A DNA stretch of 64,000 nucleotides, taken from positions 135,718,001 through 135,782,000 of the forward strand of contig NC_091290.1 of NCBI RefSeq assembly GCF_032444005.1, in the 5' to 3' direction. Source of the DNA: Ranitomeya imitator (taxonomy: Eukaryota). Under the pieces are notes generated by a model, which saw only the letters and a list, made by a program, of their open reading frames with translations, searched no databases and was not told the origin of the DNA. Below, in pieces: positions 4,784-59,668 of the stretch (positions are counted from its first letter, which is position 1; each line of letters opens with the position of its first letter). Both the position numbers and the translations under genes were made by a program.

Positions 4784-4871
4784 GGAAATAAGCCCGGATC
4801 TGGAGGAAGCCGTGTCCGGTGTGGTTTGGTGCGCTCCACGTTTAGAGGTGGAAATTCCAGAACTGAAACCA
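4784..4871 (+). CDS. IST1: IST1-like paralog A, coding exon 3 (EISPDLEEAVSGVVWCAPRLEVEIPELKP)
   Basis: AG/GT bounded, 88 nt, phase 2 to 0. 14/29 identical to human IST1 ELDSGLAESVSTLIWAAPRLQSEVAELKI (recalled). Coding exons 1-2 are not in the window. Confidence 0.9.
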
Positions 4872-4971
4872 GTGGGTAATAGAATATCTGCATCATAACA
4901 TTTTTTTTTGCTAGGATGTATCTCTAGGAGAAAGTTTTTAAAATTTTGCCTTAAACTCTTAGGGTGATGTA

Positions 4972-6116
4972 CAGTGCCTTGATTAAGTATTCACACGCAC
5001 AAGGGAAATACATTTCCAAGGAAAATTTTACGTGGTTTTCTAATTATTTTAAAAATATAAATCTGAAGATTGTGAGATGCATTTATATTCAGCCCCTCTC
5101 CCAAGTCAATACTTTGTAGGACCACCTTGCCTGTATTTAGCTCCATCCATATTCCCGTGAACTCTCACCAGCTTCCCTGTCCCTGCTGAAGAAAAGTCTC
5201 CCCACAGCATGATGCTACCATCACCATGTTTGACAGTGGGGATGGTGTTTTCAGGGTGATGTGCAGTGTTAATTTTGCGTGTTTTGCAATTAGTGCCAAA
5301 AGTTCTACTTTAGTCTCATCTGACCAGAGGACCTTCTTTCACATGCTAGCTGTGTCCCCTAAAAGGCTTTTACCAAACTGCAAACAGGACTTCTTATGGC
5401 TTTCTTTCACAAATAACTTTCTTCTTGACACTCTTCCTTAAAGGCCAGATTTGTGAAGTATACAATTAATAGTTGTCCTGTGGAGAGAGTCTCCCACCTG
5501 AGCTGTGGATATCTCCAGCTCCTCCAGAATGACCATAGACCTCTTGGCCGCTTCTCTGATTAGTGCTCTCCTTGCTTGGGATGTCAGGTTAGGTGGACGG
5601 CCATATCTTGCTAGGTTTGCAGTTGTGCCAACTCCTTCCATTTTTGGATGATGGATTGAGCAGTGTTTGGGCTATTTTTTATAAACTAACCCTGCTTTAC
5701 TCTTCTCAACAACTTTATCCCTGACCTGTCTGGTGTGTTCCTTGATTTTCATGATGCCGTTTGATCCCTAATTTTCTCAAACCTCTGAGGCCTTCACAGA
5801 ACATCTGTAGTTATACTGAGATGAAATTTCCCACAGGTGGTTTCAATTGACTAATTATGTGAATTCTGGAGTCAATTGGTCACTCAGGATTTTATTTAGG
5901 GGTATCAGATTACCCGGGGGCTGAATACAAATGCACTGCACAATTTTAAGATTTATATATTTAAAATAATAAGAAAACCATAAGAAAACCTTTTACACTT
6001 CACAAGTACTTGCTACTTTGTGTTGGCATATCACATAAAATCCCATTACGTTTGTGGGTGTAAAGTGAGACAGAATTGAAAAGTTCACGGGGTAGGAATA
6101 CTTTTTCAAGGCATTG
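4972..6116 (-). mobile_element. Decayed Tc1-like transposon in IST1-A intron 3
   Basis: TA|CAGTGCCTTG...CAAGGCATTG|TA termini. Minus-strand transposase remnant 5438-5641 (GRPPNLTSQARRALIREAAKR...LHKSGL). Confidence 0.85.
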
Positions 6117-6394
6117 TACCACACAAAGCCAACATGCTGTAATTTCCACCTGCAAAGAGGAGCAGTGCAATGTGTCTTTAATGTGACGGTTGTGGAAGGG
6201 TCCAGTATAGGGCCGCTGATATCCAAAATCTCCCTGGAAAGGGAAATATTTGTAAATTCTGTATTTTACATATTTAATTACCTTTTCATTAGATTTTTTT
6301 AGACATTGCTGTGAAGCATAAAAAATGTCAAAGCCGAAGTGAATGGATTGTGGTTTTTTTTTGCAGGGAATGATCTTTTCTGTGCACTTTGCAG

Positions 6395-6478
6395 GTCTCT
6401 ATTCAGTTGTGTAACAAGTATGGAAAAAAGTTTGGCAAGCTGTGCCAGAAAGGTAAAGCCGAATCTATCAATCGGAAA
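6395..6478 (+). CDS. IST1: IST1-like paralog A, coding exon 4 (VSIQLCNKYGKKFGKLCQKGKAESINRK)
   Basis: ttgcag/GTAAGT, 84 nt, phase 0-0. Aligns without gaps to IST1 VADQLCAKYSKEYGKLCRTNQIGTVNDR. Confidence 0.9.
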
Positions 6479-6964
6479 GTAAGTGCCAAATTTAGATTGG
6501 TATCTCAGTCATGTGTTTTAGGATACACAAGGTCCAGGGTACAGACATATACAGTGTATTATACCTTGTGCTCCATTTCATTAACTTTCGCACAACTTGA
6601 GACATTTTTCCCCAAATTCTGCATTCTTGCAGTTTTTGAAATTCATTATTCTCATGTTCTTCTTGACTTGGACAATCCCTTTGTGTTATGGTTGATCATT
6701 GACCAATGATTGCTTGATCACAGGGTGTCCCACTGCTTTCCCGGAATCTATTAGTGACCTGGGAAGCATGTGCTTATTTTCCTTGCAGCGCCATCACAGG
6801 AGAGATAAAGTATTACCTAGTACCCAATAGGTTGTCCATGGGTAGCCTAGACGTGGTGGGTCCTCCGGAGGGAAAGATGGTCTGTGTGGTCAATGTCTAA
6901 GAGATAAGTGTCCTCATAGGTTTTAAAAAATGGACAATCCCTTTAACACTTCCTCTGTCCACAG

Positions 6965-7075
6965 CTTATTCATGGGCTCAGCACCACAGCTCCTTCTAAA
7001 TGTCTGGTGGAGAAGTACCTTATGGAGATCAGCCACCATTATAACATCCCCTATGAAGCTGATGTCGCAGATTTA
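6965..7075 (+). CDS. IST1: IST1-like paralog A, coding exon 5 (LIHGLSTTAPSKCLVEKYLMEISHHYNIPYEADVADL)
   Basis: ccacag/GTGAGT, 111 nt, phase 0-0. Aligns without gaps to LMHKLSVEAPPKILVERYLIEIAKNYNVPYEPDSVVM. Confidence 0.92.
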
Positions 7076-7159
7076 GTGAGTATAATTAAGAAACTGTGAT
7101 CTTGTACACTGCCTCAGTTGTACATTTGAGGGACTTCAATACTGTTTAAAGGGGCAGTG

Positions 7160-8814: not shown

Positions 8815-9279
8815 GTGAGTATCTGCTATTCCAAAATATTGGCTATGCAGTAAGTAGTTGTTCCCTAAAAAAAATTATATTCACCTGTTTAAACCAGTGC
8901 AGCTCTGTCTCCACTGCTCCTGTGGTCCCGCTAGTCTGTTTACTACCCAGTGATAGCACGCTGTAGAGGCATATGACTGCTGCAGCCAATCACTGCCCTG
9001 TGATTGGCTGTAGCAGTCAGACTAATGTGCATGTGCAGAATAATATCATTGGTGCAATTAAGCAAAAAAGATGGGACATACTGATAGATGGCACTGGAGA
9101 TGCCAGGGTTTAAACAGGTGAATATCCATTTTTTTTTTAGTATTTTATCAACTTCCTTGCACTTGGCCAATTTTTTTTAGGTCTCTAACAGCCTCCTTAA
9201 GCAAAGACTGGAATTTGCCTGTGATGCATGTTTTCTGAGTCAGTTTATTTTCAAGTAATGTCTGGTCCTTTCTTTAAAA

Positions 9280-9962
9280 GTAGTAGAAGTAATAGAAATA
9301 GTAAATATAGTAGTAGTTGTAGAAATTGTAGTAGTAGTGATAGTAAATATAGTAGTTGTAGAAATTGTAGTAGTAGTGATAGTAGTAGTGATAGTAGTAG
9401 TAGAAATTATTGTACTGATAGTAGTAGAAACTATAATAGTAGTAGTGGAAATCATAATAGCACAGTAGTAGTGATAGTAGTGGAAATCAATAAAGTAGTA
9501 GCAGCAATCATAATAATAGTAACTAGTGGTGGTAGTAATAGTAGTAGTAGTAGTAGAAATTATTATTGTAGTAGTAGTAATCATCATAGTAGAAGTAATA
9601 AAAGTTATAGTATAGTAGCAATAAAAATAATAGTAGTAGTAGTTGTAGTAGTATAAATTATTGTAGTAATAGTTGTGGAAATTATTACAATAGTAGTAAT
9701 TGTAGTGGTAGTTGTAGAAATTATTGTAGTATTAATAGTAGTAGTGTAAATTAATGTATTAGTAGCAATCATAATTATAGTATTAGCAGTAGTGGTAGTA
9801 ATAATAGTAGTAGTGGAGTTTATTATAGTAGTTGTAATTGTAGTGGTAGTAGTAGAAATCATAGTAGTAGTTCTATTAATGGTAGTAGAAATTATAGTAC
9901 AGTAGTAGTAATAGTAGTGGAAATGAATAAAGTAGTAGTAGTAGCAATCATAATTATAGTCA

Positions 9963-10001
<39 letters not shown>

Positions 10002-11580
10002 CAGCAGCAGTAGAAATTATTATTGTAGTAGTAGTAATAATAGTAGTAATCATCTTAGTAGAAGTAATAAAGGTTATAGTATAGTAGTAATCATAATAAA
10101 AATAGTTGTAGTAGTAGAAATTACTGTAGTAATAGTTGTGGAAAGCATTATGGTAGTAATTGTAGTGGTAGTTCTAGAAATTATAATAGTAGAAATTATT
10201 GTAGTAGTAATAGTTTTAGCGGAAATTATTGTAGTAGTAGCAATCATAATTGTATTGGTAGTAATAGTAATAGTAGAAATTATTGTAGTAGTAGAATTTA
10301 TTATAGTAGTAGTAATTGTAGTGGTAGTAGTAGAAATCATAATAATAGTAGTAGAAAGATTAGTACTGCTACTAATAGTAATAGTAATTATAATAATAAT
10401 AGTAATAATATAATAATATATAATAATAATAATAATTAGATATAATAATAATAATAATAATAATAATATAATAGTAGTAGTGGAAATTAATATAGTAATG
10501 GTAGTAATCCTAATAATAGTAGCAGTAGTAATAGTTATCATAAAAATATTAGTAATAGAAATTACTGTAGTAGTAATAGTAGTTGTAGAAATCATAATAA
10601 TAGTAGTAGTAATAATGGTGGTAGAAATTATTGTAGAAGTAGTAATACAACAACCAAAAAAAAAACAACCATATGGTTAATGTGGAGGGCAAACAGAAGT
10701 GATCCAACCAATTAAAAGATACATTTTACTGAAACATATTAAAATATACAATTAAAAAGCAAAAAAAATCTATAAAGGGGACGCAGAGCAAATGTGGAGG
10801 GAGAAAATAATTTAATAGATAGAGAGGGTATAATAACAGTCCAGTAACTCCCCCTAGCTGGATGGCCAGGTAACCAAACCATGTACATAATACAGTGTAT
10901 AGATGTAAGTGCACAAAAAGGACCCTCTCAAAATGGTGGTAGGCACATAGAGGTAGACAGTATACAGGTGGATAAGAGGGGTATCAGAATCTACTAAATA
11001 TCCCCTAGTGCTATTAACAATGAATAGATAAGCTCTGAGGATAAAGTACTATACAGTCCAAAATAATAAGGTGCTGCCAAAAAATAGGCTTAACGTTCAT
11101 AAAGTATACCTGTGTGATGTAAATTACAGCTGCCACGAGGGATGGGCTCAGCATCCCCTCACCCCGACGCGCGTTTCGCCGCCAGCTTCTTATCTTTTAA
11201 TTTTACTCAGTTGGATCACTGCTGTTTGCCCTCCACATATTAGCCATATGTGTGTTTTTTTGGGGGTTGTTGTATCTTGCATGAAATACCTACATGTACG
11301 AAGGACTACCATTTTGGTTTAGAAGTAGTAATAGTAGTAGTTGTAAAAAGTGTAATAGCAGTAGCTAAAGAAATCATAGTAGTAGTACAATCATTATAGT
11401 AGTAGTTTAAATGATTGCAGTAGTAGTAGTAATACTAGTTGTCGTAGGAGTCATTAGGGGTAAAGACTATACCTATAGTTGTAGTGAAAATCCTAGTATT
11501 AGTAGTAGGTGTTGTAGGAATGATGATGCTAGTAGTGGTGGTAATAGTAGAAATCACTTGGTAGTTATAATTACTAGTAA
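9280..11580. repeat. Degenerate (AGT)n/(AAT)n low-complexity tract, interrupted at 10648-11319
   Basis: Read directly; it gives rise to the Ser/Thr/Ile/Val-rich spurious ORFs. Confidence 0.9.
10648..11319 (-). mobile_element. Penelope-like (pLTR-type) insertion with inverted ends and a truncated hammerhead
   Basis: About 10645-10721 is an imperfect reverse complement of about 11191-11275. Minus-strand AAGAAGC-TGGCG-GCGAAACGCGCGTC-GGGG at 11162-11191. Flanking direct repeat TAGAAGTAGTAATA (10634-10647, 11320-11333), but in low-complexity DNA. Confidence 0.55.
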
Positions 11581-11614: not shown

Positions 11615-11719
11615 GTCTCTCCTCCCCATCACGTTGGTCTCTATGAAACACAAAAAATCCTTACTCTCCCTCCGCCCTGTGAGGTTGGAGCAGCACCATT
11701 AGTTCCCGATTATAGTCCA
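11615..11719 (+). CDS. IST1: IST1-like paralog A, predicted exon 8 (VSPPHHVGLYETQKILTLPPPCEVGAAPLVPDYSP)
   Basis: ttacag acceptor, weak GTAAAT donor, 105 nt, phase 0-0; similar to exon 7. Confidence 0.55.
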
Positions 11720-11947: not shown

Positions 11948-12046
11948 GGCTATCACTATGCTGAATCTCCTGAATGCTTCAAGACAGAATTTTCAGATAA
12001 GAAAGTTCCACCTGCTGTCCCTGTCAGTCCTCCTTCATGTGATCTG
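11948..12046 (+). CDS. IST1: IST1-like paralog A, predicted exon 9 (GYHYAESPECFKTEFSDKKVPPAVPVSPPSCDL)
   Basis: ttgtag/GTGAGT, 99 nt, phase 0-0. Its end resembles the IST1 exon ending HPPQIPATPPSYES. Confidence 0.65.
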
Positions 12047-12095: not shown

Positions 12096-13040
12096 GGGCT
12101 CTTTCACACGTCAGTGTGTCAGGTATGTGTGGTGACAGTTTTCACACGTACCAGACACACTTACACATGTAGACCCATTTAAGTGAATGTGTCTGCATTG
12201 TTCCCTGCTCTGCTGTCCAGCAGGGAAGAATGTTCAGAGTTGTATTCAACTGATAACAGCAAGAGAAGGCAGTGCCTGATGGGACTACTGCTCCCATCAG
12301 CCTACACCTGCTGCCGCTAATAACAGTGAGAGAAGGAGTGGCTGATTGGAGTATTCATCAGCTGCCGCCTGCACTATAGATAAATAAATAAAACGGCTTG
12401 GGTTCCCCTGTATTTTTGATAACCAGCCAGGCAAAACTGACAGCTGCGGGTTGCAACCCTCAGCTGTCAGCTTCAGCAAGGCTGGTTATAAAGAATAGAG
12501 AAATCCCCATGCTAGTTTTTTAATTATAAGAAATCATTTTAAAAAAACAGCATGGGCTGTCCCCCATTTTTTACAACCAGGTACTCTCAGGCTGGTAAGT
12601 GGCTACAGATATTGACCACCCCCAGCCTAAAAATAGTAGCCTGCAGCTGCCCAGAAAAGGTGCATCTATTAGATGCGACAATTCTGGCACTTTGCCCGGC
12701 ACTTTCCAGCGGTGGCAAGTGAGATTCATATTTGTGGGGTTGATGTCACCTTTGTATTGTCTGATGACATCAAGCCCATGGGTTAGTAATGGAGAACCGT
12801 CTATACGACACCTATCCATTACTAATCCTATAGTTACATGGTAAATATAGACACAGCCAGAATAAAGTCCTTTATTAGAAACAAAACAATTTTCAATTTT
12901 TATTTAAAAAACAACAAACACAGTTATACTTACCACCCATTCCATTGAAGCCCTCGTCTCCTGTAATAAAACAAAAATAAAAAAACAACATCCCTCACCT
13001 GTCCGACGTTCTCTCCCATGCCGTAATCCATGTTTGGGGA
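12096..13040. mobile_element. Truncated Harbinger-type non-autonomous element
   Basis: TAA|GGGCTCTTTCACAC start; the interior resembles that of the 22595-24247 element. Right end uncertain. Confidence 0.5.
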
Positions 13041-22019: not shown

Positions 22020-22107
22020 ATGTTTGGAACAAAGTTTAAAGCACAGAACCTGAGTGCCAGCCTAAAAAATGTCAACAGCCAAATAGAAAAGGTGAAAGAG
22101 AACAAAA
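22020..22107 (+). CDS. IST1: IST1-like paralog B, coding exon 1 (MFGTKFKAQNLSASLKNVNSQIEKVKENK)
   Basis: Acceptor at 22008/22009, ATG at +11, 88 coding nt, GTAAGT donor in phase 1. 9/29 identical to human MLGSGFKAERLRVNLRLVINRLKLLEKKK. Confidence 0.85.
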
Positions 22108-22594
22108 GTAAGTATAAGTAAGGGGTGCTTATACGTTAAAGAGAACCACCTACCCTGCCACCAATTCTTTATAGTGATATTAATAGGTTTATAAACATAT
22201 CACTGATTCTATATATACTGTGCATATATATATTGTTTAGCTTCTAGTTACACTTAATGTCTTTTATGGAGCTCGGCAGGAGGATGGTCCAAACATCTTG
22301 TAAAACTAACTACAAATCTGTATATGAGGCTTGTGCAAATCCTTCTGTCTCTTCATGTGATCCCAGACAGACTGGATGATGTGAGATCAGGGCTCTGTGG
22401 GGGCCGGATTATCACTTCCAAGACCCCATGACTAATGCAGTGGATGAAGGATATGTCATGCTTCATGCCCTTCCTTCAAAAACTGTTCAAAACCTGATGA
22501 AGGCAACAGGCGGTCACCAAGTATTGATGCAATTTAGTTTTCCCTTTTGTTCATTCATTTTCTATTGTGTTACTTGATAAACATAAACTATTAA

Positions 22595-22829
22595 GGCTGG
22601 AGTCACACTCAGCGTAAGACAATACGGTCCGTATATTACGGCCGTAATACGCTGAAAAGTCCCCGTAGCTCCTCCGTAGGCAGGGTGTTTCAGTGTTTTT
22701 TTGCGCATGGCATCCTCCGTATGTAATCCGTATGGCATCCGTACTGCGTGTTTTTCTCGCAGGCTTGCAAAACCAACATACGGCTATACAAGGGATCCAT
22801 GTGTAAAAAAAAAAAAAAAACATATATAC

Positions 22830-22865
<36 letters not shown>

Positions 22866-41892: not shown

Positions 41893-42240
41893 TGAAAAGG
41901 CATAAAAACAGTTTTACAATCCTCAGACACCGATAGCCTGTGCAAAGGCATAGAAAACATGTGGCCAATAGACTAGGACATAAGTAAGGGCAGACTGGGA
42001 ACAGGGAGGAGAGAAATAGGGAAACAAACAAGACATACGACAAATAAACCAGTGGACCGAGGTCCATTCAGGGATACCCTGAGTCCAGAAGGTGAGAATC
42101 AGAAAAACAGTTCACCTATGGGGCAAACAAATGCTGCGGGAACTCTCAAAAGAGAAACCAACGCAGCTTAAAAAAGCGAAAAAGGAAAAACCAAGTGTAT
42201 CCGTGCGGGAAAATAGCCAGGAACCATAGTTGCAGTGGGC

Positions 42241-46180: not shown

Positions 46181-47595
46181 GCCAGAGGTTTTACATAATA
46201 TTTACCCTGCCACATCAGATAGATACTGGAGGTGCCTGGTGGCTGTGGGCTCATTGCCACATATACTCTGGGATTGCCAGACTATATCCCCGTTATGGAA
46301 GAGAGTACAGAGGTTGATTTTTCAGGTGTTGGATGTAGAGTGTCCTCCTTTACCTTGATGATATCATTGTCTATTCACGGACATATGAAGACCACATTCA
46401 TCATCTGTCTGAAGTCTTCAAGGTACTAAGCCAACATGGCCTCAAAATCAAGCCCTCCAAATGCCACTTGCTAAAACCACGAGTCAGGAAAAAATGGGAC
46501 AGAGAACGGCATGTTGTAAGCGATGGGCACAGAAGGACTGTTGGCACCAGTTTGGCAGTTGTCGCTGGGTTCACTCATGATGTAGGTGCTGAGGTGACTT
46601 CTCACAATCGGACAGAGTCTTTGATATATGTACACAGATGAATCCTGTTCGTGACGCCAAAAATTGTGGTGGGCCACTGGGGAGATGTCAGATGTTGCAG
46701 AAGGGTCAGCTTGGGCATGTAGTCCCACTGGCAGCAGATAATGACGTCACGGTAGCTGAAGTGTGTCGCTGGACCCCTCAACACTTCCCTCGTGTCCACA
46801 ACAATTGTCAATAGCGGGAGGTGGTACTTGTAGATGGTATAGGACCTCCTGGGGGCACTCCTGTAGAGGTGGTGTCTAGGTGCAGGTTTTGGAGCACCCG
46901 TGGTATTTGTGCAATCTCAAGCAGCCAGACACACAGGTGAACTTGTAAACGTAACGATTTTACTGAAAGAGGTAACGGGGGTACAGTCCTCAGAAGACAA
47001 GCGAGGTTATGGTCTCTTGGGGCAATATACAAAAAAGGTTGCACTCTATCATGCTAAAGCATATCAATGTGAAATATATGAAATATGAATAGCAATATGG
47101 CTTTTGAATATTAGGAGGTAGCTCCTCCTGTTATGCACCTATTCACACTAGTTTGGCTGTGCCAGTCAGTTTTTTGTCATGTGCATGTCCCCTCTGGGCG
47201 GCTGGAGCAGAGTTCTCATCACTTGCTATTAGAGGAAGTGCTATGCGCAGTCCAAGAAATATTACACTGATGGAGGGACCTTCACAGATTGGCTCTCTGC
47301 GGAAACACACTAAAGTGTGGAAGTACTCACGGTTTTGAGCCTACTGTTCCCTATCACAGGGGGTAGGTTAAAAAAAGTCGGTGGCATGGAAGCCACGTGG
47401 GTCTGGTCCTGGCTAGAAGCAAACAGGATAACCAACATGTAGGAGAGCACATGGGCAGCGTTATCTCTCCTGACTAGAAGACATCACTCCATTGTGGAGT
47501 AGATTATGTGGAGAAAGATGTCCCCTCAGCGTGGACTTGCATGGAAAATTATGATGGGAGCAGTAAAGTTTTCTCCCTCCGACAGCTTGAACTGC

Positions 47596-47793: not shown

Positions 47794-48174
47794 GCCCTAA
47801 GATGGGAGGCTCCTCCCGGCCATTTCCATGGCAGCTTGTTGTTAGGAGAATAATCACTTAGATTTCATATACACATTGGCCAGTAGATGACAGCAACGCA
47901 CATTTATGAGTCATCGGTATACAATGCAAATGTATTACATCCCTAGGACCCAGGAAACCCAGGAAAGAAATAATCTTGGTACCGTGTTAGCCAGTAGATA
48001 GAAAAATATTTTTTTATGTTTTTTTTATGGTTAAATTCATGTATTTTATAATCACTTATTTGCTATATATATAATTATACATTTGATATGTGTATATTTT
48101 ATCATTATTTTTAGTGGATGCTTTCCTGAAACGGAAAGTACTTGCAAGCAGCATAATACAAAGAATAGCAGGTT

Positions 48175-48212
48175 TACCCAGAATCCTTTGCAGTAGGCGG
48201 AGCTATGCAAAT
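48175..48212. promoter_or_regulatory. snRNA-type distal element in each monomer: SPH/Staf(ZNF143)-like motif, GC box, octamer
   Basis: TACCCAGAATCCTTTGCA (48175-48192, one mismatch to the recalled consensus YWCCCRNMATSCMYYRCR), GGCGGAGC (48196-48203), perfect ATGCAAAT (48205-48212); repeated every 384 bp. Confidence 0.65.
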
Positions 48213-48293
48213 CATCTCTTTCCACCCCTGTCTAATCCACAGCGCTTGGAACCGCCAAGCGTGCAATGCTGCGGATTAGTTTCTAAATTTACA

Positions 48294-48372
48294 CAGCCAA
48301 CCAATTCCTACCTGTGGACACGTGTTTCGGGCTTTAGGCCCTCATCAGCACAGGGCTGGAATTGGTTGGCTG
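48294..48372 (-). ncRNA. Type I hammerhead ribozyme, copy 1
   Basis: Stem I CCUGUG/CACAGG, CUGAUGA, stem II GGGC-CUAAA-GCCC, GAAAC-ACGU-GUC. Stem I is extended by 15 bp (CAGCCAACCAAUUCC/GGAAUUGGUUGGCUG) beyond an AGC/UA internal loop. Confidence 0.93.
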
Positions 48373-48677
48373 TATGGAGTGGGGCTCGGTGAGCAAGCGA
48401 TACATACATGCTAGCCACCTTAGGGAGAGACCCAAGTTGGGCTAAATGTAGCGGGACGAAAGAGACCGAAAAGCCCTCTACTTAAAGGAAATACATAGTG
48501 GATGCTTTCCTGAAACGGAAAGTACTTGCAAGCAGCATAATACAAAGAATAGCAGGTTTACCCAGAATCCTTTGCAGTAGGCGGAGCTATGCAAATCATC
48601 TCTTTCCACCCCTGTCTAATCCACAGCGCTTGGAACCGCCAAGCGTGCAATGCTGCGGATTAGTTTCTAAATTTACA

Positions 48678-48756
48678 CAGCCAACCAATTCCTACCTGTG
48701 GACACGTGTTTCGGGCTTTAGGCCCTCATCAGCACAGGGCTGGAATTGGTTGGCTG
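48678..48756 (-). ncRNA. Type I hammerhead ribozyme, copy 2
   Basis: Identical to copy 1, offset +384. Confidence 0.93.
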
Positions 48757-49061
48757 TATGGAGTGGGGCTCGGTGAGCAAGCGATACATACATGCTAGCC
48801 ACCTTAGGGAGAGACCCAAGTTGGGCTAAATGTAGCGGGACGAAAGAGACCGAAAAGCCCTCTACTTAAAGGAAATACATAGTGGATGCTTTCCTGAAAC
48901 GGAAAGTACTTGCAAGCAGCATAATACAAAGAATAGCATGTTTACCCAGAATCCTTTGCAGTAGGCGGAGCTATGCAAATCATCTCTTTCCACCCCTGTC
49001 TAATCCACAGCGCTTGGAACCGCCAAGCGTGCAATGCTGCGGATTAGTTTCTAAATTTACA

Positions 49062-49140
49062 CAGCCAACCAATTCCTACCTGTGGACACGTGTTTCGGGC
49101 TTTAGGCCCTCATCAGCACAGGGCTGGAATTGGTTGGCTG
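49062..49140 (-). ncRNA. Type I hammerhead ribozyme, copy 3
   Basis: Identical to copy 1, offset +768. Confidence 0.93.
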
Positions 49141-49688
49141 TATGGAGTGGGGCTCGGTGAGCAAGCGATACATACATGCTAGCCACCTTAGGGAGAGACC
49201 CAAGTTGGGCTAAATGTAGCGGGACGAAAGAGACCGAAAAGCCCTCTACTTAAAGGAAATACATAGTGGATGCTTTCCTGAAACGGAAAGTACTTGCAAG
49301 CAGCATAATACAAAGAATAGCAGGTTTACCCAGAATCCTTTGCAGTAGGCGGAGCTATGCAAATCATCTCTTTCCACCCCTGTCTAATCCACAGCGCTTG
49401 GAACCGCCAAGCGTGCAATGCTGCGGATTAGTTTCTAAATTTACACAGCCAACCAATTGAGATGATTTGCATAGCTCCGCCTACTGCAAAGGATTCTGGG
49501 TAAACCTGCTATTCTTTGTATTATGCTGCTTGCAAGTACTTTCCGTTTCAGGAAAGCATCCACTATGTATTTCCTTTAAGTAGAGGGCTTTTCGGTCTCT
49601 TTCGTCCCGCTACATTTAGCCCAACTTGGGTCTCTCCCTAAGGTGGCTAGCATGTATGTATCGCTTGCTCACCGAGCCCCACTCCATA

Positions 49689-49767
49689 CAGCCAACCAAT
49701 TCCAGCCCTGTGCTGATGAGGGCCTAAAGCCCGAAACACGTGTCCACAGGTAGGAATTGGTTGGCTG
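49689..49767 (+). ncRNA. Type I hammerhead ribozyme, copy 4 (inverted arm); predicted cleavage after 49744
   Basis: CCTGTG 49707-49712, CTGATGA 49713-49719, GGGCCTAAAGCCC, GAAAC 49733-49737, ACGT, GTC 49742-49744, CACAGG 49745-49750. Confidence 0.93.
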
Positions 49768-50440
49768 TGTAAATTTAGAAACTAATCCGCAGCATTGCAC
49801 GCTTGGCGGTTCCAAGCGCTGTGGATTAGACAGGGGTGGAAAGAGATGATTTGCATAGCTCCGCCTACTGCAAAGGATTCTGGGTAAACCTGCTATTCTT
49901 TGTATTATGCTGCTTGCAAGTACTTTCCGTTTCAGGAAAGCATCCACTATGTATTTCCTTTAAGTAGAGGGCTTTTCGGTCTCTTTCGTCCCGCTACATT
50001 TAGCCCAACTTGGGTCTCTCCCTAAGGTGGCTAGCATGTATGTATCATTATTTTTATACACTTCTATTTTACAGATTAATTGTTATTTTTTGCACTTTAT
50101 AATAATTTTTTCCACATACATTCCTTGTAACAAACGCCCCATTTAGCATACAAATGCATTTTCATTGAGCATAATTTTATGTAACTTTTAATAAATTTTT
50201 TCTGTCATTTTTATCTGAGATATTAATAAAGTAAATTTTAATTCTGGACTGTTAATTGTTTTTTTCGTTCGTGGTGTTTTGGTTGCTAATTGCCGAGTGT
50301 CCATTTGGTTCACAGTAGCACTCATTTATATTTAGGATATTTTACACTTATTGACAAAAAACTTTAATAATATTTCTCTTTTTTTTGTGCTTCTGTGTGT
50401 TGTCCCTCCTTCTCTTTGTTTGGTATTTTTATGGTATGCA

Positions 50441-53400
50441 GGCTGGCACTGTTATGGATCACTGTGGCTGACAGTTATGGGACACTGGCACTTTTATGGA
50501 TCACTGTGACTGGTACTGTTATGGATCACTGTGGCTGGTACTGTTATGGATCACTGTGGCTGGTACTGCTATGGATCACTGTGACTGGTACTGTTATGGA
50601 TCACTGTGGCTGGTACTGTTATGGATCACTGTGGCTGGTACTGTTATGGATCACTGTGGCTGGTACTGTTATGGATCACTGTGGCTGGTACTGTTATGGA
50701 TCACTGTGGCTGGTACTGTTATGGATCACTGTGGCTGGTACTGTTATGGATCACTGTGACTGGTACTGTTATGGATCACTGTGGCTGGTACTGTTATGGA
50801 TCACTGTGGCTGGTACTGTTATGGATCACTGTGGCTGGTACTGTTATGGATCACTGTGACTGGTACTGTTATGGATCACTGTGGCTGGTACTGTTATGGA
50901 TCTCTGTGGCTGGTACTGTTATGGATCTCTGTGGCTGGTACTGTTATGGATCACTGTGGCTGGTACTGTTATGGATCACTGTGACTGGTACTGTTATGGA
51001 TCACTGTGGCTGGTACTGTTATGGATCACTGTGGCTGGTACTGTTATGGATCACTGTGGCTGGTACTGTTTTGGATCACTGTGGCTGGTACTGTTATGGA
51101 TCACTGTGGCTGGTACTGTTATGGATCACTGTGGCTGGTATTGTTATGGATCACTGTGGCTGGTACTGTTATGGATCACTGTGGCTGGTACTGTTATGGA
51201 TCACTGTGGCTGGTACTGTTATGGATCACTGTGGCTGGTACTGTTATGGATCACTGTGACTGGTACTGTTATGGATCACTGTGGCTGGTACTGTTATGGA
51301 TCACTGTGGCTGGTACTGTTATGGATCACTGTGGCTGGTACTGTTATGGATCACTGTGGCTGGTACTGTTATGGATCACTGTGGCTGGTACTGTTATGGA
51401 TCACTGTGGCTGGTACTGTTATGGATCACTGTGACTGGTACTGTTATGGATCACTGTGGCTGGTACTGTTATGGATCTCTGTGGCTGGTACTGTTATGGA
51501 TCTCTGTGGCTGGTACTGTTATGGATCACTGTGGCTGGTACTGTTATGGATCACTGTGACTGGTACTGTTATGGATCACTGTGGCTGGTACTGTTATGGA
51601 TCACTGTGGCTGGTACTGTTATGGATCACTGTGGCTGGTACTGTTTTGGATCACTGTGGCTGGTACTGTTATGGATCACTGTGGCTGGTACTGTTATGGA
51701 TCACTGTGGCTGGTATTGTTATGGATCACTGTGGCTGGTACTGTTATGGATCACTGTGGCTGGTACTGTTATGGATCACTGTGGCTGGTACTGTTATGGA
51801 TCACTGTGGCTGGTACTGTTATGGATCACTGTGACTGGTACTGTTATGGATCACTGTGGCTGGTACTGTTATGGATCACTGTGGCTGGTACTGTTATGGA
51901 TCACTGTGGCTGGTACTGTTATGGATCACTGTGGCTGGTACTGTTATGGATCACTGTGGCTGGTACTGTTATGGATCACTGTGGCTGGTACTGTTATGGA
52001 TCACTGTGGCTGGTACTGTTATGGATCACTGTGGCTGGTACTGTTATGGATCACTGTGGCTGGTACTGTTATGGATCACTGTGGCTGGTACTGTTATGGA
52101 TCACTGTGACTGGTACTGTTATGGATCACTGTGGCTGGTACTGTTATGGATCACTGTGGCTGGTACTGTTATGGATCACTGTGACTGGTACTGTTATGGA
52201 TCACTGTGGCTGGTACTGTTATGGATCACTGTGGCTGGTACTGTTATGGATCACTGTGGCTGGTACTGTTATGGATCACTGTGACTGGTACTGTTATGGA
52301 TCACTGTGGCTGGTACTGTTATGGATCACTGTGGCTGGTACTGTTATGGATCTCTGTGGCTGGTACTGTTATGGATCACTGTGGCTGGTACTGTTATGGA
52401 TCACTGTGGCTGGTACTGTTATGGATCACTGTGGCTGGTACTGTTATGGATCACTGTGACTGGTACTGTTATGGATCACTGTGGCTGGTACTGTTATGGA
52501 TCTCTGTGGCTGGTACTGTTATGGATCACTGTGGCTGGTACTGTTATGGATCACTGTGGCTGGTACTGTTATGGATCTCTGTGGCTGGTACTGTTATGGA
52601 TCTCTGTGGCTTGTACTGTTATGGATCACTGTGGCTGGTACTGTTATGGATCACTGTGACTGGTACTGTTATGGATCACTGTGGCTGGTACTGTTATGGA
52701 TCACTGTGGCTGGTACTGTTATGGATCACTGTGGCTGGTACTGTTTTGGATCACTGTGGCTGGTACTGTTATGGATCACTGTGGCTGGTACTGTTATGGA
52801 TCACTGTGGCTGGTACTGTTTTGGATCACTGTGGCTGGTACTGTTATGGATCACTGTGACTGGTACTGTTATGGATCACTGTGGCTGGTACTGTTATGGA
52901 TCACTGTGGCTGGTACTGTTTTGGATCACTGTGGCTGGTACTGTTTTGGATCACTGTGGCTGGTACTGTTATGGATCACTGTGGCTGGTACTGTTATGGA
53001 TCACTGTGGCTGGTACTGTTTTGGATCACTGTGGCTGGTACTGTTTTGGATCACTGTGGCTGGTACTGTTATGGATCACTGTGGCTGGTACTGTTATGGA
53101 TCACTGTGACTGGTACTGTTATGGATCACTGTGGCTGGTATTGTTATGGATCACTGTGGCTGGTACTGTTATGGATCACTGTGGCTGGTACTGTTATGGA
53201 TCACTGTGGCTGGTACTGTTATGGATCACTGTGGCTGGTACTGTTATGGATCACTGTGGCTGGTACTGTTATGGATCACTGTGGCTGGTACTGTTATGGA
53301 TCACTGTGACTGGTACTGTTATGGATCACTGTGGCTGGTACTGTTATGGATCTCTGTGGCTGGTACTGTTATGGATCTCTGTGGCTGGTACTGTTATGGA

Positions 53401-56175
53401 TCACTGTGGCTGGTACTGTTATGGATCACTGTGACTGGTACTGTTATGGATCACTGTGGCTGGTACTGTTATGGATCACTGTGGCTGGTACTGTTATGGA
53501 TCACTGTGGCTGGTACTGTTTTGGATCACTGTGGCTGGTACTGTTATGGATCACTGTGGCTGGTACTGTTATGGATCACTGTGGCTGGTATTGTTATGGA
53601 TCACTGTGGCTGGTACTGTTATGGATCACTGTGGCTGGTACTGTTATGGATCACTGTGGCTGGTACTGTTATGGATCACTGTGGCTGGTACTGTTATGGA
53701 TCACTGTGGCTGGTACTGTTATGGATCACTGTGGCTGGTACTGTTATGGATCACTGTGGCTGGTACTGTTATGGATCACTGTGGCTGGTACTGTTATGGA
53801 TCACTGTGGCTGGTACTGTTATGGATCACTGTGGCTGGTACTGTTATGGATCACTGTGGCTGGTACTGTTATGGATCACTGTGGCTGGTACTGTTATGGA
53901 TCACTGTGGCTGGTACTGTTATGGATCACTGTGGCTGGTACTGTTATGGATCACTGTGACTGGTACTGTTATGGATCACTGTGGCTGGTACTGTTATGGA
54001 TCACTGTGGCTGGTACTGTTATGGATCACTGTGACTGGTACTGTTATGGATCACTGTGGCTGGTACTGTTATGGATCACTGTGGCTGGTACTGTTATGGA
54101 TCACTGTGGCTGGTACTGTTATGGATCACTGTGACTGGTACTGTTATGGATCACTGTGGCTGGTACTGTTATGGATCACTGTGGCTGGTACTGTTATGGA
54201 TCTCTGTGGCTGGTACTGTTATGGATCACTGTGGCTGGTACTGTTATGGATCACTGTGGCTGGTACTGTTATGGATCACTGTGACTGGTACTGTTATGGA
54301 TCACTGTGGCTGGTACTGTTATGGATCTCTGTGGCTGGTACTGTTATGGATCACTGTGGCTGGTACTGTTATGGATCACTGTGGCTGGTACTGTTATGGA
54401 TCTCTGTGGCTGGTACTGTTATGGATCTCTGTGGCTTGTACTGTTATGGATCACTGTGGCTGGTACTGTTATGGATCACTGTGACTGGTACTGTTATGGA
54501 TCACTGTGGCTGGTACTGTTATGGATCACTGTGGCTGGTACTGTTATGGATCACTGTGGCTGGTACTGTTTTGGATCACTGTGGCTGGTACTGTTATGGA
54601 TCACTGTGGCTGGTACTGTTATGGATCACTGTGGCTGGTACTGTTTTGGATCACTGTGGCTGGTACTGTTATGGATCACTGTGACTGGTACTGTTATGGA
54701 TCACTGTGGCTGGTACTGTTATGGATCACTGTGGCTGGTACTGTTTTGGATCACTGTGGCTGGTACTGTTTTGGATCACTGTGGCTGGTACTGTTATGGA
54801 TCACTGTGGCTGGTACTGTTATGGATCACTGTGGCTGGTACTCTTTTGGATCACTGTGGCTGGTACTGTTTTGGATCACTGTGGCTGGTACTGTTATGGA
54901 TCACTGTGGCTGGTACTGTTATGGATCACCGTGACTGGTACTGTTATGGATCACCGTGGCTGGTATTGTTATGGATCACTGTGGCTGGTACTGTTATGGG
55001 ACACTGTGGCTGGTATTGTTATGGATCACTGTGGCTGGTACTGTTATGGATCTCTGTGGCTGGTACTGTTATGGATCACTGTGGCTGGTACTGTTATGGA
55101 TCTCTGTGGCTGGTACTGTTATGGATCACTGTGGCTGGTACTGTTATGGATCACTGTGGCTGGTACTGTTATGGATCTCTGTGGCTGGTACTGTTATGGA
55201 TCTCTGTGGCTTGTACTGTTATGGATCACTGTGGCTGGTACTGTTATGGATCACTGTGACTGGTACTGTTATGGATCACTGTGGCTGGTACTGTTATGGA
55301 TCACTGTGGCTGGTACTGTTATGGATCACTGTGGCTGGTACTGTTTTGGATCACTGTGGCTGGTACTGTTATGGATCACTGTGGCTGGTACTGTTATGGA
55401 TCACTGTGGCTGGTACTGTTTTGGATCACTGTGGCTGGTACTGTTATGGATCACTGTGACTGGTACTGTTATGGATCACTGTGGCTGGTACTGTTATGGA
55501 TCACTGTGGCTGGTACTGTTTTGGATCACTGTGGCTGGTACTGTTTTGGATCACTGTGGCTGGTACTGTTATGGATCACTGTGGCTGGTACTGTTATGGA
55601 TCACTGTGGCTGGTACTCTTTTGGATCACTGTGGCTGGTACTGTTTTGGATCACTGTGGCTGGTACTGTTATGGATCACTGTGGCTGGTACTGTTATGGA
55701 TCACCGTGACTGGTACTGTTATGGATCACTGTGGCTGGTATTGTTATGGATCACTGTGGCTGGTACTGTTATGGGACACTGTGGCTGGTATTGTTATGGA
55801 TCACTGTGACTGGTACTGTTATGGATCACTGTGGCTGGTATTGTTATGGATCACTGTGGCTGGTATTGTTATGGGACACTGCTTGATACTGTTATGAGAC
55901 ACTATGACTGACACTCTTATTTTCATGGTACTCAGGCTGGCAATGTTATGGATCACGGCCGCTGGCAGAGTTATGGGGCATTGCTTGGCACTGTAATGGA
56001 TCACTGTGATTGGCACTTTTATGAATCACTGTGATTGGCACTGTTATGTGATACTGGGTGACACTATTATGGGGCATTGCTTGGCACTGTTATGCATTAC
56101 TGTGGCTGGCACTGTTATGGAGCACTGGCAGTGTTATAGATCAGTATAGTTGGCACTGTTATAGGTAAGTGTGGC
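50441..56175. repeat. 25-bp minisatellite (GGTACTGTTATGGATCACTGTGGCT), ~217 homogeneous copies to about 55875, then degenerate
   Basis: Read directly. Variant units recur at offsets of 575, 775 and 1825 bp. Confidence 0.97.
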
Positions 56176-56339
56176 TGTATTTTTTGCAGTTAGGGTCTCT
56201 CTTGCTGCAAATCCATGCACATTCATCAGGATAACTAGCTCGCTTTGGCATTTTCCTGTTTGTGCCGCTCTTGCGTACACACCACCTCTGCTATGTATGT
56301 ACTGCAGCCACACACCCAGGTAAGGTATGGCACTATGTG

Positions 56340-56471
56340 GTCATACACATCACATGATCCCCGCCCTGCGATGACATCACGGTACAGAACACGTGCCTCC
56401 CTACCCACATCAGTAAATATCACATATCCTGCCAGACTGCTTCCTGACGCTGCTGCGGGGAGAGAGCTCAG
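56340..56471 (+). promoter_or_regulatory. Candidate promoter and non-coding first exon of IST1 paralog C
   Basis: GC box CCCCGCCC (56359-56366), CRE-like TGACATCA (56372-56379), strong donor CTCAG|GTAAGT at 56471/56472. Confidence 0.5.
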
Positions 56472-57699
56472 GTAAGTGTATTATTCCATCAGAATTATAC
56501 GTTTTATGACTTTTCTATTATCTGGCGTATTATAGCGGTGTTTTATGGCACCGATCCTGAATGACATCTCGCTATATAAATTCATTCGATACTGTAGCGA
56601 AGACTAAAACAATGGAAAAATACTTAACAAAGAAGTAACAATTTGTAGCTGTTTTTTTGTTTGTTAGTGTCTTAGTTCATAGTTTGTGATTTTTAGTAGC
56701 GGTGACACAAGTGTTGTAGATTGTACTATTGCTTTAATTGCAACAGAATCTCTCGGCAGCAGACTTCACTAGCATCTGTGCCAAGTGTGAATGTAGTAGG
56801 ATCATTGAAGTGGTCTTATTAAAGGGGTTGTCCAGGATTTAGGGTTTTTTTTCCCCAAAAACAGCGCCACACCTGACTATAGGTGGTGTGTGGTATTGAA
56901 GATCAACCCAGTGGTGGACATAGAGAAAAGAGGCCCTTGTGCAAAAATAGTATATTGGTCCTTTGCAGTCCAATAATTCACCTGTATGCAAAATTCTACC
57001 TACTTTGTAGGCGGTAGTGGCCCTCTTACTTGTCGGGCCCCTCTGCGGCTGCACAAATTGGTATGTTCGCACCTGGATCAACCTCATATCAAAGGACCTT
57101 GGCTGCAATACCAAACACAACCCACAGACAGGCAGGGCGCTGTTTCGAACAAAGTAGCCATGTTTGCCCTTTACAGACAGGTTGTACAAGTCCAATATTA
57201 GAGTACGGACCGACATGTCCTGTCGAGTCGATATAGGGACATATGAGGAGACCCTCGGACCGTCTAGGCTCGGATTGTGAATGTCGGATGTATGAAGCCG
57301 GCACAAGGGACATTTGTCACTCCGGAGAATTGACCTCTGCTGCAATTCCCACAGGACTAAGTATATCCAAAAGTAAAAGAAGTTTAGGCAAAGAAATTGT
57401 TTTGGGGTTAAAAAGGCAAATTAAGAAGAAATAAAGATGATTTATCTGAAAGCAAAGTGGTCGGAAAATGTAAGGGTCTACAAGAGCAATCACTTCTTCC
57501 CATGGTCGGTCCTCCATAGTAAATATTGGAGTCCTGGATTCGGAGCTCCTCTGAAAACATCGGCAGCTGTGGTGTCTGATTCCACAAGCCACGTGATGAC
57601 GAGTCACGTACCGGTTTTTCAGGTTCCTCGTCATTGATGCGAGCTCAGAGTTTCACATGATAATGAGCCGACAGAAACCGACACATAAACAATGTCCGA

Positions 57700-58960
57700 G
57701 ATAAAAGGAACGTGACTTTTATCCAACACCCATCTCAGTAGTTCCAGGAACAACAACTAGGGGGCAAGGGTAGGGGGATAGACAGAGATGAGGGGGGAGA
57801 TATAGGGTGGTGCAGGACTGTGGAGAGCTTAGTGGGTGAGAGAGATAAGTTTATATTGTATTCTGTAGCAGCTGGGCAACCAGTGCAATGGCTGGCACAG
57901 GGTGGAGGCATCAGTGAAGCAGCTGGTCAGAAATATCACCCTGGCTGCTGCATCCAGGATGGATTGGAGAGGAGAACGTTTGATAAGAGGGAGACCGATC
58001 AGAGGAGAGTTTCAGTAGTCCAGAAGAGAGCGAATAACAATGACAGGAAGAGTCTTAGCAGTTTCAAAGGTGAGAAAAGGTCGGATTCTTGAGATGTTTT
58101 CAAGGTGCAGGTGACATTCGCAAGCGATTGATTGGGTATAGGGAATAAAGGAAAGTTTTGTGTCAAATATGACCGCAAGACAGCGAATGTGTGGCTTGGA
58201 GTTATGGTTGCACCACGCACCCAAGGAAATTGCAAAGTCGGGTACAGGTAGGTTAGTAGTGGGAGGAATCACAGCAAGTTCAGTTTTGGGGAGATTCAAT
58301 TCAAATGGAGGGAGGACATAATGTTAGAGACAGTGGACAGACAATCACTGGTGTTTTGTATTAGGGTGGTCAGGAGACAATGTGTCTAATTGGTGACATC
58401 AGCATAGAGATGGTACTGAAAACCGAATCTACTGATGGTTTGTCCAAAAGGGGCAGTATAAGAGGAGAAGAGGAGGAGGGGGCCTAGGACTGATGAGGGG
58501 GCGTAGGACTGATTATTGAGGAACCCCAACAGTAAGGGGAAGATGAGAAGAGGAGGAGACAGCAAAAGACACAGTGAACAGAGAGATAGGAGGAGAACCA
58601 GGACTCCTTGAGGCCGATGGAGTGGAGCATATTGAGGAGGAGCTGATGATCCACAGTGTCGAATGCTGCGGAGAGATCCAGGAGAATCAGCATGGAGTAG
58701 TGACCATTAGATTTAGCTGTTAGTAGGTCATTAGAGACTTTAGTGAGGGCAGTTTCAATAGAGTTTAAAGAGCAGAAACCAGATTGTAAGGGGTCGAGAA
58801 CAGAGTTATCTGAGAGAAAGCGGATAAGACGGGAGTGGACCAAACATTCCAGGAGTTTAGAGATGAGGGGAAGATTAGAGACAGGTCTGTGATTAGCGGC
58901 ACAGTTCTGATCGAGCGAAGACGTTTTTGAAAGTGAAGGGAAAGATACCAAAAGAAAGAG
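57700..58960 (-). mobile_element. L2-clade LINE RT fragment
   Basis: [14 protein letters not shown]...LDPLQSGF...[13 protein letters not shown]; frameshifted. Confidence 0.88.
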
Positions 58961-59580
58961 AGAGGTTAAAGGAGTGTTCTCATCTCCAAGATCGTATCCA
59001 AATATGCTGTAGGTGTAATAATATTATTAGTAAATACCCCAATTAGAAATGTAGTATAGTTCTTCTGATTCGCTATGTCGCTTACTCCATGAGTAAGGGT
59101 GCATACACTCTTACAGCATTGTTCGGAGAATTTTCATATGCAAATCTTCAACTTTTCCAGTCCGTGGATGCAGTAATAATAATAATAATAATCTTTATTT
59201 TTATATAGCGCTAACATATTCCGCAGCGCTTTACAGTTTACACACATTATCATCACTGTCCCCAATGGGGCTCACAATAAAAAAGAAGTTGTCAGCTCCG
59301 AGTCTATTGTATACTCTCAGCTCAACTTCTTGAACATTTCAAATCTCTGTTTGCTGTCAGTGAATGACACTGAGGCTGACGGCAAGGTGTCACCCAGATT
59401 TTGATAATGGTGAAAAAGTTTATAAGAAAGTTGCCTAACTTTTCAATTCCATACTGATCTGTAACACTGCCGTAAAGAAAATACTCATGGATACGTAGAA
59501 ATATTATTGATTTTGTTGTTAATAAAAAATACAGATTTTGCTAATTATTTTTTTTCTTTTAATTTAAAGGAAGGGGAAAC

Positions 59581-59668
59581 ATGTTGAAGGGTGGGTTCAA
59601 GGGTGAGCGCCTCCGGGTCAACCTGAGACTGGCCATCAATCGTTTGAAGTTGCTGGAAAAGAAAAAAA
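59581..59668 (+). CDS. IST1: IST1 paralog C, first coding exon (MLKGGFKGERLRVNLRLAINRLKLLEKKK)
   Basis: Acceptor at 59569/59570, ATG at +11, 88 nt, GTGAGT donor in phase 1. 25/29 identical to the human IST1 N-terminus. Later exons not found in the window. Confidence 0.95.

Follow-up and report, generated by a model that had tools for sequence, protein, structure and literature searches.

The 64,000-nucleotide stretch of Ranitomeya imitator DNA that we analysed (the window) carries three IST1-like copies, A, B and C, all on the + strand, and none of them is the canonical IST1. IST1 is regarded as a single, highly conserved vertebrate gene, which links ESCRT-III polymers with MIT-domain enzymes such as VPS4 and spastin. 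We think it likely that the window is part of an IST1 cluster in which C belongs to one additional frog lineage (G2), B is a spliced, MIM-less gene of another (G3), and A is a relic.

The first-pass annotation had described three gene copies with common IST1 exon sizes and phases. Pfam, PDB-chain and HMM matches confirm three IST1-like copies at the places listed below, although they amount to one complete gene (B), one first exon (C) and one partial copy (A).

3550-4003, - strand: left arm of an inverted duplication, 454 nt, 98% complementary to 6447-6900
4784-4871, + strand: A exon 3, 88 nt, in the phase of B exon 3; found by tblastn and HMM; AG acceptor, GTGGGT donor
6395-6478, + strand: A exon 4, 84 nt; last 32 nt and donor lie within the right arm of the inverted duplication
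6447-6900, + strand: right (original) arm of the inverted duplication, starting inside A exon 4
6965-7075, + strand: A exon 5, 111 nt; 57% identity to canonical IST1; GTGAGT donor
11615-11719, + strand: tentative A tail-exon relic, VGLYE...PPP, like the VGIYE exon of G1 and G2; AG/GTAAAT flanks; weak HMM match, E = 1.1
11997-12046, + strand: tentative A tail-exon relic, Pro-rich, PPxxP...PPS; AG/GTGAGT flanks; weak HMM match, E = 5.5
12924-12962, + strand: tentative A MIM2-exon relic, LYLPPIPLKPSSP against LPLPKLPSVPVSP, degenerate; weak HMM match, E = 14
22020-22107, + strand: B exon 1, ATG, 88 nt; an RNA loose end at 24986 reads its last 30 nt
24986-25166, + strand: B exon 2, 181 nt; Pfam Ist1 at 46.4 bits; RNA joint 25166>25667
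25667-25754, + strand: B exon 3, 88 nt; its joints appear in RNA from 3 runs
26136-26219, + strand: B exon 4, 84 nt; RNA joints 25754>26136 and 26219>28528
28528-28617, + strand: B exon 5, 90 nt; RNA joint 28617>29092, GT..AG with the cut 2 nt further right
29092-29181, + strand: B exon 6, 90 nt, CPYPQSN motif; an RNA loose end behind 29182 gives the first bases of exon 7
31493-31600, + strand: B exon 7, 108 nt, HFPD...IY motif
32492-32522, + strand: B exon 8, a 31-nt mini exon, ENPDFNISNE
32902-32954, + strand: B exon 9, DVGFKPELWKDDKNKKL, then TGA stop
56335-56418, + strand: possible upstream 5' exon of C; compared by eye, its ORF agrees with the N-terminal extension in isoform X1 of R. variabilis G2 (P0258)
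59581-59668, + strand: C exon 1, ATG, 88 nt; encodes the N-terminus of R. imitator P0257 (341 aa, G2) without mismatch

Group-specific HMMs run over the whole window matched exons 3-5 of A, all exons of B and exon 1 of C, and found nothing IST1-like on the minus strand. Pfam Ist1 (PF03398) matches pieces of exons 2, 3 and 4 of B and of exon 4 of A. The shared exon structure was borne out: B and C both have an exon 1 of 88 nt, exons 3 and 4 are 88 and 84 nt in A and B, phases agree among the copies, and the borders are AG/GT throughout. The 29-residue identities reported in the first pass were reproduced exactly against elephant IST1 (P0299), with 25/29 for C exon 1, 9/29 and 18/29 for B exons 1 and 3, and 14/29 for A exon 3.

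Copy B is a complete gene of nine exons (22020-32954, + strand). The translation of these exons is exactly P0246, the R. imitator protein XP_069595224.1 ("IST1 homolog"), and the gene spans 10,935 bp in GCA_032444005.1, equal to our interval. B and C are both already in RefSeq as 'IST1 homolog'. RNA contigs of 1422, 1281 and 360 nt (runs X1, X3 and X4, from two studies) carry the predicted junctions of B: the four joints listed above are all exact GT..AG, and the loose ends extend into exon 1 and exon 7. In one run the spliced mRNA had an assembler depth of 200. B is transcribed and spliced exactly as modelled.

Our gene tree indicates that frogs carry three IST1 lineages, the canonical G1 plus G2 and G3. 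Support (ultrafast bootstrap/SH-aLRT) is 98/92 for G1, 91/82 for G2, 100/100 for G3, 100/100 for G2 and G3 together, and 99/98 for all frog IST1. Measured from the frog ancestor, the paths to G1, G2 and G3 are 0.20, 0.88 and 3.6 substitutions per site long, which puts the G3 rate at about 18 times that of canonical IST1. Between hyloid and ranoid frogs, or across comparable splits, the nearly invariant G1 keeps 97-98% core identity, G2 88% and G3 49-54%. The tree agrees with the proposal that B, a G3 gene, evolves fast, but not with a recent expansion of the array: G2 is present in all sampled frog lineages, and G3, seen only in Neobatrachia, occurs across them, with an open frame and the IST1 fold kept in 11 sampled species. 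Mixophyes has two G3 copies.

The canonical G1 is not in the window. It adjoins a PKD1L3-like gene (GPS/PLAT/PKD_channel) tail-to-tail in R. variabilis and D. tinctorius. We looked for the canonical ortholog by this neighborhood and by grouping with G1; B and C fall outside G1, and the tree gives A no firm place. Copy C has only its exon 1 inside the window and the remainder beyond its end. It is not canonical IST1 but a member of the well-conserved, frog-wide G2, the lineage of Xenopus tropicalis LOC100216037. The G2 protein that starts with this exon (P0257) retains ELYC, MIM2 and MIM1.

The same three elements, ELYC, LPxLPSVP (MIM2) and the MIM1 helix, are retained in G1 and G2. In G3, ELYC is replaced by QICC, QMYC and similar, with the exception of one Mixophyes copy (EMYC); the regular expression for ELYC found no motif window in the G3 Phyllobates and G2 Discoglossus sequences. 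MIM2 is absent from G3 proteins. MIM1 is intact in one Mixophyes copy only, degenerate in Bufo, Engystomops and Pseudophryne, and truncated away in dendrobatids. G3 C-terminal ends differ by species and include short annotated products (216 aa for Mixophyes_b and 253 aa for Bufo). Most G3 proteins share the conserved motifs CPYP and HFPD in their tails.

B is an IST1-family protein by domain and by predicted fold. Exon 2 alone is above the PF03398 cutoff of 33.6 bits and is matched by PDB IST1 chains with E about 1e-11, and PF03398 is also precomputed for the full protein. The AlphaFold model has a pLDDT above 90 for residues 1-175, and it aligns to the human IST1 NTD (8V2Q_B, 3FRR, 3FRS) with target-normalised TM of 0.89-0.94 and rmsd of 0.9-1.4 A. 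All 12 family-invariant positions are kept, and 52 further columns are at least 90% conserved (55 sequences). The model argues that B keeps the closed IST1 ESCRT-III core.

The partner-binding sites around this core are changed. B has QICC where canonical IST1 has ELYC, a motif through which CHMP1 is reported to be bound (PMC5840170). Helix 1 is altered on its basic face, and a natural substitution of the K27E type is among the changes; according to a published report, R16E/K27E disrupts the interface between CHMP1B and IST1 (10.1101/798181). Some contact with CHMP1B may remain, since position 16 is basic in every G3 protein. Both MIM2 and the MIM1 helix are absent from the B protein, which stops at ...KNKKL, and in dendrobatids this end falls before the place where relatives have MIM1. 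Judging from these motifs, B would have lost the ability to recruit MIT-domain enzymes such as VPS4 and spastin, and it would probably be a poor CHMP1 binder. It could modulate or cap IST1-type polymers without recruiting enzymes, or it could have new partners that bind through the conserved tail motifs CPYP, HFPD and GFGFKxxLW. As far as the sequence goes, we believe that one of these two modes is most likely how B acts. The first pass had called both A and B fast-evolving functional paralogs. For B this stands, with spliced RNA and with frame and fold kept, and we infer constraint from the long retention of frame, fold and expression. For A it is doubtful, as this copy lacks its 5' part, is rearranged and is apparently silent.

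Two other readings of B have to be weighed. B could be a slowly dying gene, still transcribed, that has been under relaxed constraint since duplication and whose motif loss is decay. Its branches are very long, every known interaction motif is gone, and the variable C-terminal ends and short products would fit as well. However, an open frame and nine exons are kept in four dendrobatid species and, with more divergence, in seven further sampled neobatrachians; exons 3-5 are 94-99% identical among dendrobatids; and the confidently modelled core with its conserved positions, the CPYP and HFPD motifs and the depth of the spliced mRNA all speak against decay, so that we find it quite improbable. 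Somewhat less improbable, though still doubtful, is that B is an ESCRT-III decoy like retroCHMP3, antiviral or shaped by some other conflict, which by analogy would poison ESCRT-dependent virus budding, spare cellular functions and evolve in an arms race. That precedent, the missing MIM1 and MIM2, the remodelled partner-binding surfaces, the rate of G3 relative to G1 and the different fates of the MIM1 region among G3 lineages would all suit a decoy. On the other side, G3 is an old intron-bearing tandem duplicate and no recurrent young retrocopy, relaxed constraint after subfunctionalisation could also explain its fast evolution, and, unlike CHMP2, CHMP3 and CHMP4, IST1 is not known to be a core factor of budding. 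A wider version, in which neobatrachian G3 is a rapidly evolving, MIM-less natural dominant modulator or decoy of ESCRT-III, kept for probably more than 100 million years and perhaps shaped by enveloped viruses, and in which repeated duplication and loss, as in A and the two Mixophyes copies, are the footprint of that conflict, seems to us just as doubtful. A G3 of that kind would keep a polymerising core and would have gained new conserved tail motifs. We prefer to see B as a constrained gene that acts as a polymer modulator or through new partners.

Copy A has three clean open exons with six intact splice borders. Taken individually, its exon pieces match PF03398 below the cutoff. It is a very divergent third copy. 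Its substitutions avoid conserved sites (15/43 conserved vs 34/51 variable sites changed, Fisher p = 0.0035), and 7-14% of neutral simulations that reach its divergence remain stop-free. Through much of its past, A was under constraint. The HMMs found no match to exons 1-2 of A anywhere in the window; the 4.8 kb upstream of exon 3 holds a 3.2-kb satellite, at the window start, and the left arm, an inverted copy of the exon 4 end and intron 4 start. The inverted duplication that cuts into exon 4 looks young. Downstream, the three tentative relic units are collinear on the + strand, the phase of the one at 11997-12046 misfits the preceding unit, and no MIM1-like exon of A was found in the window. 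The RNA word share of A is 0.00-0.01 in the four listed runs, compared with 0.14 for B, and none of the database proteins of 61-194 aa shares words with its exon 4. Given its missing 5' part, its rearrangement and its lack of RNA signal, we consider A most probably a decaying relic. It is unlikely, but not as doubtful as a viral decoy is for B, that A is a live gene whose first exons are upstream of the window and which is expressed in an unsampled tissue or stage. The open exons with canonical borders, the pattern of substitutions, the stop-free share of the simulations and the splice-like borders of the collinear relics would agree with a live gene, and exons 1-2 could sit upstream of the satellite. 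The lack of exons 1-2 in the upstream 4.8 kb with its satellite and inverted copy, the degenerate and partly out-of-phase tail with no MIM1-like exon, the RNA word share and the empty protein search weigh against it, and we keep to the view that A is a relic.

These results add two IST1 lineages to the canonical one in frogs. G3, as represented by B, is a natural experiment in which an IST1 core has long been kept and expressed without ELYC or MIMs while evolving about 18 times faster than its parent, and its proteins would be ready-made separation-of-function variants for ESCRT biology. Given the retroCHMP3 precedent, G3 is also a candidate case of ESCRT-III-based modulation or defence reached a second time by an independent route. 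In frog genome annotation, three distinct genes share the name 'IST1 homolog', and orthology calls that choose G2 or G3 over G1 would be wrong. Our literature search found no paper that separates or studies the frog IST1 lineages, nor any on B or C.

With human IST1/KIAA0174 (PDB 3FRR, 3JC1, 6TZ4), B shares the Ist1 domain, the NTD fold (rmsd about 1 A) and the exon sizes and phases. It differs from canonical vertebrate IST1 in a core that is 43% identical, in QICC, in a remodelled helix 1, in having neither MIM2 nor MIM1 and in another conserved tail. The G2 protein of C, in contrast, shares ELYC, MIM2 and MIM1 with the canonical protein. The syntenic ortholog is G1 beside PKD1L3 and not A, B or C. 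The RefSeq frog entries named 'IST1 homolog' are automatic and use one name for three lineages; XP_069595224.1 is B, C is in the lineage of NP_001135497.1 (LOC100216037), and XP_040266100.1 (Bufo bufo) is a further example. The retroCHMP3 proteins of New World monkeys and mice are truncated CHMP3 duplicates with altered contacts to other ESCRT-III factors (10.1101/2020.08.30.273656). B likewise is an ESCRT-III gene duplicate without the C-terminal MIT-interacting region and with contacts that are probably altered. However, retroCHMP3 is a young, recurrent retrocopy that has been shown to be antiviral, and B, known from sequence and RNA, arose long ago from IST1 by tandem duplication and still has introns; its nine exons with the parental exon structure speak against an origin by retrotransposition. 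The plant IST1-LIKE (ISTL) proteins are likewise a multi-copy IST1 family within one lineage, but they are an independent expansion, and the copies in frogs group together as a single clade within vertebrate IST1.

The window is eukaryotic DNA that is rich in repeats. Short plus-strand frames near 25 kb and 6.4 kb match the Pfam Ist1 model and PDB IST1 chains, and we mapped exons with tblastn, using frog IST1 proteins, and with group-specific HMMs. Three exon sets were found, all on the plus strand, while the HMMs gave no IST1-like match on the minus strand of the window:

4784-4871, 6395-6478 and 6965-7075, plus strand: exons of copy A (tblastn and HMMs)
22020-32954, plus strand: copy B, nine exons (tblastn and HMMs)
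59581-59668, plus strand: exon 1 of copy C (tblastn and HMMs)

Exon sizes (88/181/88/84 nt) and phases are concordant between the copies, and every border has AG/GT. The first-pass annotation had proposed three same-strand IST1-like copies; this is confirmed, with the qualification that only the first exon of C and three exons of A are seen. The four identity counts given there were reproduced exactly with elephant IST1 as the reference. For the last exon of B we rejected 32844-32954 in phase 0, since comparison with orthologs reveals a mini exon of 31 nt and moves the acceptor to 32901.

With exon 2 of B as the query, the best matches in an exhaustive HMMER search were divergent frog proteins, namely RefSeq 'IST1 homolog' models of Engystomops, Mixophyes, Hyperolius and Bufo, and a profile search added dendrobatid members. 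The nine B exons translate with zero differences to P0246, the B protein (XP_069595224.1, 'IST1 homolog [Ranitomeya imitator]'), whose gene is 10,935 bp in GCA_032444005.1 and has the same length in the window. Exon 1 of C is the N-terminus of P0257, a 341-aa R. imitator protein. Whether the copies were already annotated or described was a question left by the first-pass annotation: B and C are thus catalogued in RefSeq under one generic name, and full-text literature searches turned up no publication on IST1 paralogs in frogs or vertebrates. Apart possibly from A, no unannotated gene has been discovered here. The new element is that a distinct, fast-evolving IST1 lineage lacking the MIT-interacting motifs (MIMs) is recognised, together with the true orthology relations.

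We built a maximum-likelihood tree of 59 proteins (supports are ultrafast bootstrap / SH-aLRT). Frog IST1 forms one group versus amniotes and fishes (99/98), with three lineages: canonical G1 (98/92), G2 (91/82), to which C belongs, and G3 (100/100), to which B belongs; G2 and G3 group together at 100/100. Members of G2 come from Bombina, Discoglossus, Xenopus (LOC100216037), Rhinophrynus, Spea, Pelodytes and neobatrachians. The G3 members sampled are all neobatrachian: dendrobatids, Engystomops, Bufo, Pseudophryne, Mixophyes (two copies), Hyperolius and Rana. The topology places G3 outside all G2; the alternative that G3 arose from G2 within Neobatrachia is not rejected (AU p = 0.42). With frogs as the only amphibians in the sample, the G1/G2 split can be placed no more closely than after the divergence from amniotes. 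Measured from the frog ancestor, the path to G1 is 0.20 substitutions per site, that to G2 0.88 and that to G3 3.6, and core identity across comparable splits is 97-98%, 88% and 49-54%, respectively.

The IST1 copies of each species lie on one chromosome-scale record. In R. variabilis and D. tinctorius, G1 is tail-to-tail, at about 0.5 kb, with a GPS/PLAT/PKD_channel gene, which agrees with the human IST1-PKD1L3 arrangement. With G1 beside this PKD1L3-like gene and C placed in G2 by the tree, we rejected C as the canonical IST1, and the cluster therefore has at least four members. In X. tropicalis, the locus tags of G1 and G2 (XENTR_v10011520 and XENTR_v10011537) hint that the two may be linked, some 17 models apart. 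The X. tropicalis G2 gene (LOC100216037) spans only 6.5 kb (CM004446.2:59302589-59329044 region), and upstream of it lie two genes, one with a transthyretin domain and one with a cadherin prodomain.

Copy A was argued to be functional, together with B, from its open frames and canonical splice sites. That description holds for its three exons, which are open and have good splice borders. It does not extend to the tail, where the candidates are just three units, weak and collinear, whose borders resemble splice sites; one of them is out of phase, and the MIM2-like segment is degenerate. No MIM1-like exon was found between 7 and 22 kb with regular expressions and an HMM, and HMMs did not find exons 1 and 2 of A anywhere in the window. 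The 4.8 kb upstream of the A exons hold a 39-bp satellite (1-3246, about 83 copies, 94% matches), which runs past the window start, and a copy of 6447-6900 in inverted orientation, at 98% identity. Segment 6447-6900 comprises the end of A exon 4 with the donor, followed by the first part of intron 4. The satellite occupies the expected place of A intron 2 or exon 2.

Besides the open exons, two results speak for a past function of A: its substitutions avoid conserved positions, with changes at 15 of 43 family sites that are at least 90% conserved and at 34 of 51 variable sites (p = 0.0035), and in neutral simulations to 50% protein divergence only 7-14% remain stop-free. Its word share is 0.00-0.01 in four R. 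imitator RNA runs, none of which is listed as holding A; that of B is 0.14 in two of the four (X3 and X5). A query with A exon 4 gave no word-sharing database protein in the 61-194 aa range. In the tree A falls with G3 at 87/59, and neither A with G2 (p = 0.11) nor A with G1 (p = 0.48) is rejected. In our reading, A once functioned and has since become a relic. It could instead be a live gene with its 5' exons upstream of the window, which we consider rather unlikely. The functional claim stands for B, which is spliced and keeps its frame and fold, and is doubtful for A, whose exons 1 and 2 were not found in the window and whose words are nearly absent from the four RNA runs.

Most of the other features that we identified are repeats and mobile elements:

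9228-10595: AT-rich low-complexity stretch, with long Thr/Ile-rich artefactual ORFs on both strands
37318-43317, minus strand: non-LTR retrotransposon, with a 358-aa ORF1-like frame and an endonuclease-reverse transcriptase ORF2
44041-46317, plus strand: LTR-retrotransposon gag-pol fragments in several frames (zinc knuckle, reverse transcriptase)
48112-49458 and 49669-49947: 384-bp tandem repeat, 3.5 copies, 99% identity, plus an inverted copy
50485-56127: 25-bp satellite, about 226 copies, 95% matches, giving long artefactual ORFs
60086-61111, minus strand: uninterrupted 341-aa Tc1/mariner-type transposase ORF (HTH_Tnp_Tc3_2 and DDE_3 domains)

ORF2 of the non-LTR retrotransposon falls into three separate frames (676, 203 and 365 aa), which marks the element as broken. 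The 25-bp satellite ends about 200 bp before a possible C 5' exon, and the transposase ORF is located in C intron 1.

Copy B is spliced as predicted. RNA-derived contigs from three runs and two studies cover exons 2-6, with joints at 25166>25667, 25754>26136, 26219>28528 and 28617>29092, all GT..AG, and the contig ends extend into the last part of exon 1 on one side and the first part of exon 7 on the other. RNA depth in the introns is zero except at repeats. Two short intronic stretches, 24600-24800 and 29330-29720, have very high contig depths (600-2700) in each of the four runs, probably from dispersed repeats that are transcribed and do not belong to B. Intron 4 also has a 29-bp G-rich tandem array of about 45 copies (26694-28021). 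Four dendrobatid species retain the B frame and exon set, and among them exons 3-5 are 94-99% identical; in seven further sampled neobatrachian species the frame persists, strongly diverged. In the AlphaFold model, residues 1-175 have pLDDT >90 and superpose on the human IST1 NTD with TM 0.89-0.94 and rmsd 0.9-1.4 A, and the last 95 residues are predicted to be disordered. At the D. tinctorius locus of the B ortholog (P0133), a gene for a 113-aa Ist1-domain product overlaps the ortholog's 3' end on the opposite strand; HMMs found no counterpart on the minus strand of the R. imitator window.

The ELYC motif, MIM2 (LPxLPSVP) and the MIM1 helix are retained in G1 and G2 with few exceptions, namely two models that are truncated and three variants of the G2 MIM1 that escape the pattern. 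In G3, the ELYC position reads QICC, QMYC, QMFC and similar, and MIM2 is absent from every member sampled. An intact MIM1 (DQLANRLKELK) is seen in one Mixophyes copy only; the C-terminal ends are degenerate in Bufo, Engystomops and Pseudophryne, and the dendrobatid proteins end at ...KNKKL, short of the MIM1 position. Helix 1 of G3 has lost R10, R12, R21 and K23, position 16 is still basic, and position 27 of B is E. An R16E/K27E double mutant reportedly breaks the CHMP1B-IST1 interface while IST1 homopolymers still form (10.1101/798181), and ELYC is reported to contribute to IST1-CHMP1 binding (PMC5840170). In their tails most G3 proteins have CPYP and HFPD, two motifs that can be followed back to the tail of G2 (in Xenopus, SFPD...VGIYE), and most align at a GF(G)FK..LW-type block, which a strict pattern catches in two proteins. 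We rejected GFGFK as the IST1 DLIDVGF motif or MIM1 by its position, and one Mixophyes copy has MIM1 further downstream.

B is an expressed protein that keeps the closed IST1 core and lacks the known recruiting motifs. Judged by its motifs and by the literature on human and yeast IST1, it would be unable to bring VPS4, spastin and other MIT-domain enzymes to ESCRT-III polymers, and its CHMP1 contacts would be weakened. Most likely, B would either modulate or cap IST1-type assemblies in a non-recruiting way or act through new partners that bind its tail motifs. Simple decay of B is unlikely because of its retention, fold and expression. A role in defence is possible by analogy with retroCHMP3, which offers a precedent (10.1101/2020.08.30.273656). 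Like B, the retroCHMP3 proteins of mammals are ESCRT-III duplicates without a MIM, and expansions of IST1 itself are already known from the ISTL genes of plants.
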